In this document: positions 18,530 through 53,024 of the stretch, one piece after another
How positions within the stretch are numbered: the stretch's first letter is position 1
Layout of the letters: the number at the start of each line of letters is the position of its first letter
Assembly: GCA_026936335.1 (NCBI GenBank)
Contig: JAPMXV010000055.1
Location: forward strand, 62,001-126,000
DNA length: 64,000 bases
Direction of reading: 5' to 3'
DNA from: Mantamonas sphyraenae STR306
Taxonomy: Eukaryota; Protista; CRuMs
Program-made: the position numbers and the translations under genes
Notes under the pieces: generated by a model
The model's input: only the letters and a program-made list of their open reading frames with translations
Told to the model about the DNA's origin: nothing
The model's database searches: none

Positions 18530-18675
18530 CGGACAAAGGTGAGCGGAACGAGCCAGCGGCATTGGTCCGTGCGGTGACTCGTGTGTCGCAACTGCGTGGG
18601 ATCTCCGAGGAAGATGTATGTCGCATCACAAGCGAGAACGCACGGCGGTTGTTCCGCCTGGCCAAGCGCGCATGA
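18530..18675 (+). pseudogene. Promoterless 3' fragment of the TatD gene carried in duplication A
   Basis: Translates DKGERNEPAALVRAVTRVSQLRGISEEDVCRITSENARRLFRLAKRA*, matching the end of the TatD gene at 29582-29727. Confidence 0.85.
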
Positions 18676-19086
18676 CGATTCAACGTTCCTGTGTGCCCCT
18701 GATGCCACACCCACTCTCCAGGTCGTGGCTACGCGTACACTGCCATGCCGCGGTCGCGTGGCGATGACCAACGCGGTGGAAACGCGGCGCGTGCCGCGTG
18801 ACGCGGCAGCACTACTTGAGGCGATGGGCGGCGCGCTGGAAGAAGCACCAAAACACAACCACAACCAACATGGTAGGTGCCACCGGCAGACACAGAGAGC
18901 AAGACACACAGAGAGTGTGTGCATGTGTGTGCATGAGATTGGACAAGAGGGAGCGGAGGAGGAGGAGGAGGATTGTGTGCAGGAGTGACCGTTTGGGAAT
19001 TTTCAGCGCGGCGAACGGGTTGTTTGCGCGTGTGGCAGGCGAGGGAGGGACGGATGAGATGGAAGAAGGGGAGAAAGAGAGACAGG

Positions 19087-20001
19087 ATGGTGCATGAAAG
19101 AGAAAGAGGTGGTGGGGAACGGGTGTGGATGAGTGTGGCAAGAGTGTGGAGGGGTGGAAAAAGAGGACGCGGCAAAAACGCGGCCCTCTCGCGGAAGGCG
19201 GCAAGGCGCTGACACTGGGGACGCAAAACGGGACGCACGGGGACATGGACACATTGTGCAGGCTGACCAACTGACGGAAGAGCAGGTGTGTTGAAGGGAT
19301 GGGTGGGAGAGGAGGATGGATGAGTGAGGAGAGAGGGAGAAAAAGGCGTGGGAAAGGAAGAGTGGCTGACGCACGCGTTTTTTTGCGCGCGCTGTGTGCA
19401 GATCGCTGAGTTCAAGGAGGCTTTCTCCCTGTTCGACAAGGACGGTGATGGAACGATCACCACCAAGGAGCTGGGCACTGTGATGCGCTCTCTGGGCCAG
19501 AACCCCACGGAGGGTAAGTGAAGGGTGGAGGAAAGGGGAGAGGCGGTTGAAAGAGCGAGAAGAGAGGAGCCAAGAGGGAAAAAGGGCGAGACGGAACCCT
19601 CTCTTTGGTAGAGGCGCAGAGGCAGGACAAAGGTGGAGTATGGGACACATGGCTGACATTGAATGGATGGCCACGACAACGTACACACAGCTGAGCTGCA
19701 GGACATGATCAACGAGGTTGACGCTGACGGCAACGGCACGATCGACTTCCCTGAGTTCCTGACCATGATGGCCCGCAAGATGAAGGACACGGACAGCGAG
19801 GACGAGATCAAGGAGGCCTTCCGCGTGTTCGACAAGGACGGCAACGGATACATCAGCGCCGCTGAGCTGCGTCATGTGATGACGACTCTGGGCGAGAAGC
19901 TGACCGACGAGGAGGTGGACGAGATGATCCGCGAGGCCGACGTCGATGGCGATGGACAGATCAACTACGAGGAGTTTGTCAAGATGATGATGAACTCGTA
20001 A
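19087..20001 (+). CDS. CALM: Calmodulin, copy 1; exons 19087-19089 (ATG only), 19262-19285, 19402-19513, 19691-20001
   Basis: Spliced product [75 protein letters not shown] with four EF-hands; all introns GT-AG. Confidence 0.97.
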
Positions 20002-20581
20002 ATGGACGGATCTGCCCGGAGAATGGGGCTGGAGAGCTGGACCAGGCGCGTGCATGCGGCGTGTGTGTTGAGGTCGGCTGGTTGACGTGGAGCTTTTGAC
20101 GAGCGCACGGCAATCAGACGGCTTGGCAGACACGGGCAAGTGGCGCAGGGTTTGAGCACAGTGCATGCGTGGACAAAAGCCGCACACGGAGACGTTTGGG
20201 GCACACACGAATGAACAAAACCAGCACTGCCACCATCATCGAACATTGTTGCACAGGGGTGTGAGAGGTTGCCAGTTGCGCGAGGGATGCCACGCCAACA
20301 AACACACGACACCCCACAAAGGCCAATGTCGTCATCGTCGTCATCGTCGTCGTGTCGCGGAGCCAACACGCAAACACGACCAAATCCAGAGCTTCACCGT
20401 ACTGTACCACACACCAAGATGCAAACTGGAATGGAAGGGAGATGGCAGAAACTCATGGGACTGCATTCGAAAGGGCTTTTGCACTTGTGGGTCTTGCGCT
20501 TGCTCGATTTCAAAGGCGAGCTCCTGCACTGGTCACGCAAAGTAGGACAGGTGTGAGAAAGCCGTAGGCACGGTAAGGTGC

Positions 20582-50520: not shown

Positions 50521-50648
50521 CTCCCTTGGGCCCGTTGGCGCCACGTGTGTGCCCCACTCGCCCAAACCATGGAGAGGTGACAGTGCACTGTGTGTGTGTG
50601 GATATGGGGGGAGGTGGGGTGTGTGCGAGAGTCCACCAAGCCAATTCC

Positions 50649-51428
50649 ATGTCGATTCGGGTCGCCCCAAAGTCGCTCCAGGTGGCCTACGACGACGCTT
50701 CCCTGGACAGCACGGCGTTCCGGCTGGAGAATGCCTCGCAAATGGGCGTCACCTTCAAAGTGCTGGCCACACATGCATCGGCGTGGAATGTGCGGCCACC
50801 CTCGGGGTTCCTGGACCCGCACAGCAACTTGGACGTCCATCTCTCGCTGAAGGCCGGTGCCGTGGCCAAACCCACACAGCACAAGTTCAAGATCACCTTC
50901 TCATCCGATGGAAAGGTGTTGGGCTCCAAAATGGTGGGGGTATCGCTGGTGAGTGCGGTATCCAGCGGGGCTGGGGTGGGCTCGTCCTCAGGCGGACGTG
51001 GCACAAGCAACGGCCACGACACAGCGCACACATGGCATGGCACAGAGTCATCCACACGGTCACCGTCACACATGGCCTCGCCTGTATCCTCCCCGGGATC
51101 CACCATGTCGCTACCCTCTCCACAGAGCAGTGGTGGCGGAGCAGCGAGCGTGAGGAATGGCGAGACACAGCCGAGCTCGGGCAAGGCCAGCGACACGTCA
51201 TCAAGACGAGGGGGAGCATCCAGCGGTGCCAAACCCATGCGCACATCACGTGACACAAAGTCTGGAGTGCTGGAGGCCATCACCAGCGTGCTGCCATTCC
51301 TGGTATGCGTCACCGGCCTGGTTTGGCAGTTCCGTGAGGAGCCGCACTTTTGGCAACTGTCCGTGGCCTTTGCCATGGGCATGCTTGCCATGTTGGGACA
51401 CCTGTGGGCCAACAGCAGGTTGAGGTGA
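50649..51428 (+). CDS. MSP (major sperm protein) domain protein with two C-terminal TMs (MOSPD1/3-like)
   Basis: FRLEN..VTFKVLAT..WNVRPPSGFLDP..HKFKI MSP motif, Ser-rich linker and hydrophobic hairpin with AFAMGML. Confidence 0.75.
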   Translation: MSIRVAPKSLQVAYDDASLDSTAFRLENASQMGVTFKVLATHASAWNVRPPSGFLDPHSNLDVHLSLKAGAVAKPTQHKFKITFSSDGKVLGSKMVGVSLVSAVSSGAGVGSSSGGRGTSNGHDTAHTWHGTESSTRSPSHMASPVSSPGSTMSLPSPQSSGGGAASVRNGETQPSSGKASDTSSRRGGASSGAKPMRTSRDTKSGVLEAITSVLPFLVCVTGLVWQFREEPHFWQLSVAFAMGMLAMLGHLWANSRLR

Positions 51429-51513
51429 CGGCAGCTGACTGTGGCAAGAGAGTTTCGGCGCGACTAGTCGACTTCAAGACACCTCGCGGAATGTGGGGCA
51501 TTGCTGCGAGGAT

Positions 51514-53024
51514 AAAGTGAGTGCAGAGACGGAAGCAGAGTGGAGGCCAAGCAAGGATGGCATCGGCAGAGCAGAACAGAGCATGTCAGGGACACAGTCA
51601 CACCAGCAGGGGAGAATACAAAGATTCACGCACTCCACGTTTAGGGGTGCATGCAACCATCCATCCATCCCTCTGCTCTCGCGCTGTGTCCTCTCCCGCC
51701 TCTCTCGTCATCTCTCTCTCCCCCGGCCCCTCTGCGTTCCTTCTCCATCCCTTCCCATGCTCTGCTCTGCCCTCCCCTCCCGAGCACATTCAACCGACCC
51801 CAGCTCCTGGCCCCCGTCCTCCACACTCACATGCCCCCGCCTATCCCCACACCTGCCTTCCCTCCTCCCACACATCCATCTCTCACATCCTTCTGTCATT
51901 ACGTGTCATTTCCTTCTCCTGCCTCCCACACACGCTCTTGTCCACGCCGCCGTCCACTCCCACGCCCTCCTCCGCCTTTCTCCCTCCTCCTTCCTCCATC
52001 CCCTGTCTCTCATCAACTCCTCCTCGTCTCGTCTCCTCCTTCCCTCGTTCCCCTTCTCACTTCTCTCCTCCTCTCCTTCATCTCATCAGTGCTCCCCCTG
52101 GCCCTGAGGAGGCCGCAGCGGGAACGCCACCGGGTTCATCTGCGACAAGAACACCACCAGCCACATCAGCCACATGCACGCCACAGTCATCGACACAAGC
52201 ACCCGATAGAACCTGCATCGTATCCCACGTGTTCAACGACAACCCCCCCCCCCCCCACACACATCCATCCAGACACCACCTGGTGTGTCAGCCGCCCACC
52301 CCTCCCACGCCACCCCGTCTCCCACAACTCCCACTGCCACTCACGGAATCTGCGACTTGTGCTTCGTCTGCACAAACACCATGCCTGCCAGCCACACAAT
52401 GGCATAAATAATCGTGCCCACCACTGCCGTCGATGCCGAGTCCATTGCTTCTTCTGAGTGTTTGCATGGCCCAGCGCGGATCATTCCACACTCACTCCTT
52501 CTCACTCACACACCACCGACCCAACTCTCCACCTGTCCATCATTGCCACCGCCTCACTCGCCACACACCGTGCATTGTGACACAAAGGGGAAGTCCTCAA
52601 TCTCTCTCTCTACCCCACACACACACGTGCACAAGTCCCCGATCGCCCCCCCTCCCCCGCCCTACCCTACCCTATGACTCCTCTGTGTCCGTACAACGTA
52701 CAACGTGCAATCTGCGTTGGATGCGCCCCCGCACGGAGGACAACGAGCATGGTGTCGGACGACACGCTGTGGCCGACGAGCATGAAGGGTGGGAGGAGGC
52801 GATGGAGCATGGGACGCAATGATGGAATGGGAAGGGTGTGGGCATGGGGTGTGGTGTTGATTGTGCTTGTGGTGGCCATGGGGAACAGGGCAGACGCTGG
52901 AGGAGCGGACCAGGCCACAAATGCGGAGCAAGGGGGACAAGTGCAGAAGGAGGAGCATGAGGAGCAAGAGGATGGACAGGAGATGCAAGAAGAGATGGAA
53001 GTGGCCAAGGAAGAGGCAGCGCGT
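51514..53024 (-). repeat. Inverted duplication B, right (parental) arm
   Basis: Reverse complement of 42840-44058; the outer end continues into an intact ORF. Confidence 0.96.
52086..52445 (-). CDS. ATP6V0E: V-type ATPase V0 subunit e, copy 2; exons 52445-52345 and 52212-52086
   Basis: Coding exons appear identical to copy 1; the intron differs by small indels. Confidence 0.9.

Follow-up and report, generated by a model that had tools for sequence, protein, structure and literature searches.

Two neighbouring inverted gene duplications in Mantamonas sphyraenae as probable members of a genome-wide class with variable spacers

Introduction

Human fold-back inverted duplications carry spacers of 766-70,466 bp between their two copies, with a median of 3,428 bp and 20 of 21 below 15 kb (PMC3907307). 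In yeast, inverted duplications induced by double-strand breaks (PMC10622511) and origin-dependent inverted-repeat amplification (ODIRA) with template switching at forks (PMC10766183) are reported to give inverted copies that are likewise separated by a spacer. Here we analyse two such arrangements, repeat A and repeat B, in 64,000 nucleotides of DNA from Mantamonas sphyraenae STR306 (positions 62,001-126,000 of contig JAPMXV010000055.1, assembly GCA_026936335.1), a stretch that we call the window and number from its first letter. Like the human cases, they show a kilobase-scale single-copy spacer, junctions that are not site-specific, and no transposon (PMC3907307). The known fold-back cases are reported to be large (kilobases to megabases), terminal or amplified, and to arise via dicentric or extrachromosomal intermediates. 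In contrast, the copies described here measure only 1-4 kb, are interstitial and fixed, and are equipped with intact genes.

The window is part of C55, one of 78 contigs in an assembly of 25.06 Mb. It has a base composition of 59% GC and a eukaryotic gene content, encoding among others eEF1A, a Pol-iota-like polymerase, cytochrome b561, and LRR, SPRY, F-box and CRT-like proteins. An earlier note on this DNA had pointed to the nearly equal spacers of A and B and had proposed for them either a length-constrained duplication mechanism or a systematic assembly artefact. We show here that spacers of inverted pairs in this genome vary broadly, and that A and B are probably real duplications.

Results

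The arm coordinates were obtained from a blastn self-comparison and a repeat search of the window, and the self-comparison reproduced the arms and spacers given in the earlier note. Repeat A consists of a left arm (18530-20351, plus strand) and a right arm (27914-29727, minus strand) around a spacer of 7562 bp (20352-27913). Its arms align by blastn (18530-20351 against 29727-27914) in 1826 columns, at 98.36% identity and with 7 gap openings, and the arm occurs in exactly two copies in the 25-Mb genome. Repeat B consists of a left arm (42840-44058, plus strand) and a right arm (51514-53024, minus strand) around a spacer of 7455 bp (44059-51513). Its arms align by blastn in a main block (42979-44058 against 52592-51514; 1081 columns, 98.6%) and a second block (42840-42984 against 53024-52880; 145 columns, 97.2%). 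Substitution divergence between the arms is about 0.8-0.9% in both repeats. Each repeat thus presents long reverse-complement arms on one molecule, with a similarity far above chance, and a kilobase-scale single-copy spacer between the inverted and the non-inverted copy; no other repeats were found in the spacers by self-comparison of the window, and the flanks are unique genome-wide. Each also copies one complete small gene together with broken neighbours, as had been noted before: calmodulin in A, and V-ATPase subunit e in B.

The two duplications had been taken to be independent of each other, and this view holds. Their reflection centres lie at about 24128 and 47932, and they have no sequence in common apart from a low-complexity match of about 40 nt inside the two spacers. 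Because the centres differ and the sequence is unshared, a single antiparallel pairing cannot yield both A and B, and one complex event producing the two together is rejected. The match itself is direct and 95-100% identical, and connects 24905-24947, in the LRR gene of spacer A, with 47294-47338, in an open reading frame (ORF) of spacer B. It lies at differing offsets in the two spacers and is probably a low-complexity coding repeat.

A and B are accompanied by similar pairs elsewhere in the genome. Ten loci were placed in the genome with Pfam and compared by blastn in the way used for A and B. They gave eleven further inverted pairs, with arms of 437-3897 bp, identities of 97.8-99.9% and spacers of 1126-10136 bp. 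Given as arm length, identity and spacer, they are the pairs of RNR2 (1914 bp, 99.90%, 2259 bp), PABP (3897 bp, 99.54%, 4954 bp), RPL23A (2305 bp, 98.13%, 1126 bp), RPL34 (1450 bp, 97.93%, 10136 bp), pirin (2026 bp, 97.78%, 1941 bp) and AsnRS (1926 bp, 99.59%, 4619 bp), those at the HOP1 locus (3502 bp, 97.83%, 6690 bp) and the HSP90 locus (1735 bp, 99.42%, 4272 bp), and three on contig C29 (first pair 1680 bp, 99.4%, 6408 bp; second 1313 bp, 98.7%, 1611 bp; third 437 bp, 98.6%, 7804 bp). The complete genes of the RNR2, PABP, AsnRS and RPL23A pairs have open frames in both copies.

Together with A and B, these pairs speak directly to the idea that DNA folding back or looping over some 7.5 kb, as set by a preferred resection length, a chromatin loop or a fork structure, determines the distance at which a copy is placed at this locus. 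The idea draws on the spacers of A and B, which differ by 1.4%, on the position of both derived copies to the left of their parents, on the adjacency and like divergence of the two pairs, and on the further spacer of 7804 bp in the third C29 pair. However, the 13 spacers (1126, 1611, 1941, 2259, 4272, 4619, 4954, 6408, 6690, 7455, 7562, 7804 and 10136 bp) are spread evenly over 1.1-10.1 kb, and their distribution is broad with no peak at 7.5 kb. The chance that two pre-specified spacers agree within 107 bp is about 2%, and about 1.5 such near-ties are expected among the 13 pairs. In addition, the match is limited to the inner spacer: the outer spans, at 11198 bp in A and 10185 bp in B, are unlike, and so are the arm lengths. 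The earlier note had stated that a flat genome-wide spacer distribution would make the match coincidental, and among the 13 measured pairs the distribution is indeed flat. Given the broad spread of spacers across the inverted pairs of this genome, the agreement between 7562 and 7455 bp is most likely a coincidence; the length-constrained mechanism is left unsupported, and we regard it as highly improbable.

The boundaries give no sign of a mobile element either. Across the 52 boundaries of the 13 pairs, neither a common motif nor terminal inverted repeats nor target-site duplications were found. For the four derived junctions of A and B, we agree with the earlier note: a transposase is absent there, and so are terminal inverted repeats and duplicated target sites. 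With no shared end motif or element-encoded enzyme either, and with host genes in the arms, duplication by a transposon or recombinase finds no support. Motif-free boundaries make a site-specific recombinase or a transposon unlikely and fit breakage or switching that is not site-specific.

In repeat A, the direction of copying can be read from the genes that cross the arm boundaries. The right arm carries, head to tail on the minus strand, TatD, calmodulin and RBX1, namely the TatD 3' end, calmodulin and the RBX1 start. A full-length TatD-like gene (29582-30475, minus strand, stop at 29582) has its last 146 nt in this arm, and its body is unbroken across 29727. RBX1 starts at 27939, so that 26 nt lie within the arm, and the gene is unbroken across 27914, with its RING-H2 exons running on through the spacer. 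The right arm therefore holds both ancestral junctions, and the left arm is a copy, both of whose junctions are novel. The copied neighbours are broken in the left arm, which has the last 48 codons of TatD as a 3' stump, a complete calmodulin gene and, of RBX1, the promoter and 26 nt of coding sequence (the start and 8 codons). The stump (18529-18672, plus strand) is in frame and matches positions 213-253 of 253 of Pfam TatD_DNase (E 1.4e-7). The last calmodulin exon of the right arm (28256-28567, minus strand) has EF-hand matches in Pfam, with the exons encoding ADQLTEEQ and IAEFKEAF upstream of it and the start exon at 29388 or 29168 on the same strand; the start-codon exon CAACATG|GTAGGT is found in both arms. 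The arms differ in 30 columns, all outside the calmodulin coding exons.

In the full-length TatD gene, indels of +1 at 29657 and of -1 at 29600 scramble 19 conserved C-terminal codons, and the gene matches only positions 1-234 of 253 of TatD_DNase. The scrambled tail could be a consensus error, a tolerated change or the result of exchange between the arms. The left arm occupies a 258-bp gap between two convergent ends, the stop of an ORF at 16564-18504 (plus strand) and that of eEF1A (20585, minus strand). The former stops 25 nt short of the TatD stump, with which it shares a reading frame, and a TAG separates the two (18502-18529); the inserted stump, together with the 3' region of TatD, may now act as the downstream region of this ORF. 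Spacer A holds eEF1A (20585-21889, minus strand), an LRR protein gene (23230-25755, plus strand), the body of RBX1 (about 26.9-27.9 kb, minus strand) and further ORFs. Since the RBX1 promoter and first codons are present on both arms, a flip of this spacer would break no gene, and from its sequence a flip-flop of spacer A is possible.

In repeat B, the right, parental arm contains the two-exon gene of V-ATPase subunit e (about 52100-52445, minus strand) and the 5' part of an ORF (52674-53261, plus strand) that continues beyond the arm. In the left, derived arm, the gene of V-ATPase subunit e is likewise complete, with two exons, and the ORF next to it is present as a remnant. PF05493 matches above the cut-off in both arms, at 43298-43456 (plus strand) in the left one. 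A segment of 287 bp (52593-52879) is present only in the right arm; its deletion from the left copy, at a junction with the 6-nt microhomology TTCCCC, removed the start of ORF 52674-53261 there. The differences between the arms fall in the V-ATPase subunit e intron and in non-coding DNA, and the coding sequence looks unchanged; the single substitution near it (43341/52231) lies at the edge between the intron and exon 2. Spacer B holds the genes of a TPR protein (44074-45594, minus strand), cytochrome b561 (49522-50748, minus strand) and an MSP-domain protein (ending at 51428, plus strand), along with several other ORFs.

Across the measured pairs, arm divergence ranges from 0.1% to 2.2%, and the differences are unevenly placed. 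The outer 20% of arm length holds 38% of the 238 difference events, and the share at the edges exceeds 20% in 10 of 12 pairs, A and B among them. In the arms at the HOP1 locus, dense clusters of differences lie beside more than 700 identical bases. Such patchy, edge-enriched differences would reflect an interior homogenised by gene conversion between true paralogues. Coding sequence in the middle of the arms also contributes to the edge enrichment.

These patterns bear as well on whether allelic or chimeric sequence was misplaced in the assembly to give the derived arms, each gene being single-copy in the true genome. Several observations point that way: an arm divergence of 1-2% is within the allelic range, artificial palindromes are a known hazard of published assemblies (PMC7953838), the TatD stump of the supposedly derived arm is intact in frame like a real allele while the supposedly parental copy is frameshifted, and four DNA runs of one study contain just 0.43-0.85 of the sampled words of 16500-22400 in the window. 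However, the window and the measured loci are free of Ns, which leaves no part for scaffolding joins; with single-copy flanks, haplotigs do not persist at the A and B loci; and the variable spacers show no sign of a fixed insert size. Both junctions of each derived arm are sharp and novel and lie within unique sequence, an arrangement that no path of haplotype collapse gives. The derived arms of A and B avoid coding DNA and are both placed between genes, in a window of which at least 72% is coding-like. Real structures are favoured, too, by complete genes that are intact in both copies and by arm differences that fall outside the coding exons. The 287-bp deletion that removes an ORF start in the left arm of B is expected of a neutral stump and not of an allele, and the spread of divergence among the pairs (0.1%-2.2%), edge-enriched and patchy as it is, also argues against misassembly. 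The systematic artefact put forward in the earlier note as the alternative is thus unlikely, and we would give an artefactual origin of the derived arms only a slim chance.

Further observations concern the other loci and the window at large. At C29:498661-512669, three inverted pairs, interleaved and not nested, lie within 14 kb, one of them with a pair of HORMA-domain genes, and this cluster resembles a local hot spot where inverted duplications arise. Among the 9 pairs with a placeable gene (in the window, C43, C28, C60, C26, C69, C49 and C29), the gene copies are convergent in 7, the left one on the plus and the right one on the minus strand; the sole divergent ones are those of pirin and of the HORMA genes on C29. 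Contig C43 has a tandem array at 568598-572000, whose units of about 414 bp are about 99% identical and which extends past the end of the examined stretch, and C26 has a tandem repeat at 109358-109786 with a 39-bp period, whose shifted copies are 92-98% identical. Rfam and tRNA scans of the window gave no matches. No close relative was found in the protein database, where the best match of the TPR protein has 30% identity. Exact-protein look-ups of the calmodulin exon ORF, the TPR protein and TatD gave no match, a result that is uninformative as to independent assemblies; exact junction patterns were not found among metagenome contigs, which is equally uninformative as to the junctions.

Discussion

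We favour, as a reasonably probable reading, that A and B are separate, real and recent local inverted segmental duplications and ordinary members of a common class. Their geometry and the literature point to a fold-back or template-switch mechanism. A broken or stalled 3' end would fold back, or switch to the complementary strand, a few kilobases away; 1-4 kb would then be copied and rejoined, by end-joining to the other end of the break, and the outcome would be an inverted copy inserted at the break site within an intergenic gap. This gives precisely the copy-and-paste arrangement of A and B. The length of the spacer would be the distance of the switch, from about 1 to at least 10 kb, which agrees with the spacers of the human cases (PMC3907307). 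Later, the complete gene in each arm stayed intact, with identical coding exons; the arm interiors would have been partly homogenised by gene conversion, and the arm edges and gene stumps drifted, as in the 287-bp deletion of B. Recombination between the arms may also invert the spacer and leave every gene whole.

Inverted copies around a spacer could also have been left by an inversion with staggered breaks, in which the spacer is inverted and the staggered end filled in, giving an inverted duplication at the breakpoint, and in which later recombination between the arms flips the spacer back; one arm would then have both ancestral junctions, as the right arm of A does. In Drosophila, 17 of 29 inversions have inverted gene duplications at their breakpoints (PMC1885836), and the absence of motifs and transposon ends at the boundaries here agrees with such an origin. 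The arms of the PABP pair each appear to hold one ancestral junction, with long frames crossing the right-outer and left-inner boundaries, as this route would have it before any flip, but the same geometry is equally explained by copy-and-paste and one flip. In repeat A, the right arm has both ancestral junctions, so that an extra flip must be assumed. The scale fits poorly as well: the duplications known from Drosophila, at a median of 321 bp and at most about 1.9 kb, lie beside very large inversions, whereas here arms of 1.3-3.9 kb are typical and flank 1-10 kb. Moreover, kilobases of duplex would need to be unwound, a difficulty raised by the authors of PMC1885836 themselves. Calls of junction geometry from open frames are noisy in this GC-rich genome and are clear only for A and the PABP pair, and since one recombination between the arms interconverts both geometries, the present junctions cannot separate the two routes. 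It is on account of arm length and spacer scale that we prefer the fold-back route, and we consider the staggered-break inversion unlikely.

Several points weigh against the reading of A and B as separate fold-back duplications of a common class. The TatD tail is intact in the orphan stump and scrambled in the full-length gene, and an intact stump beside a damaged gene is not what a simple history of a parent and a decaying copy predicts. The adjacency of A and B, the placement of both copies on the same side, their like divergence and their near-equal spacers are each mild, and jointly somewhat odd. The pairs used for comparison are chosen loci and not a random sample of the genome. The proposed mechanism rests on geometry and literature; any priming microhomology would lie hidden within the arms.

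As a sign of a length-constrained mechanism, the shared 7.5-kb geometry does not hold, and the value of these loci lies in the class to which they belong. This class doubles small housekeeping genes (calmodulin, V-ATPase e, RNR2, PABP and ribosomal proteins) and creates substrates for inversion and gene conversion. More tentatively, and with considerable doubt on our part, A and B may be neighbouring products of a hot spot in a lineage with an unusually active process that makes inverted copies of 1-4 kb a few kilobases from their source, giving rise to many gene-bearing mini-palindromes that are kept alike by gene conversion and whose spacers can flip without gene breakage. If such a process is at work, the small housekeeping genes of this very compact eukaryotic genome would gain dosage from it, and cassettes that switch orientation might come about as well. 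If confirmed by reads, the class would offer a natural data set on how short interstitial inverted duplications are formed and kept up. It also calls for caution in annotation, where stumps and duplicated promoters will lead to spurious or chimeric gene models.

Two described systems come close to these pairs. Like the breakpoint duplications of Drosophila (Ranz et al. 2007, PMC1885836), they consist of unique gene sequence duplicated in inverted orientation at the ends of a segment, with one copy that is often truncated and decaying. However, the Drosophila copies are about 88% identical with a median of 321 bp, whereas the arms here are 98-99.9% identical and 1.3-3.9 kb long. With the palindromes of primate Y chromosomes and those of PMC7953838 they share intact genes in inverted arms around a unique spacer, and a high identity with mosaic, edge-enriched differences that suggest gene conversion. 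In contrast to the primate Y palindromes, the pairs here are one to three orders of magnitude smaller and belong to a genome that is compact and protist-like, and the genes that they carry are ordinary housekeeping genes, not sex-chromosome gene families. The class is of a kind already known, and A and B are further examples of it.

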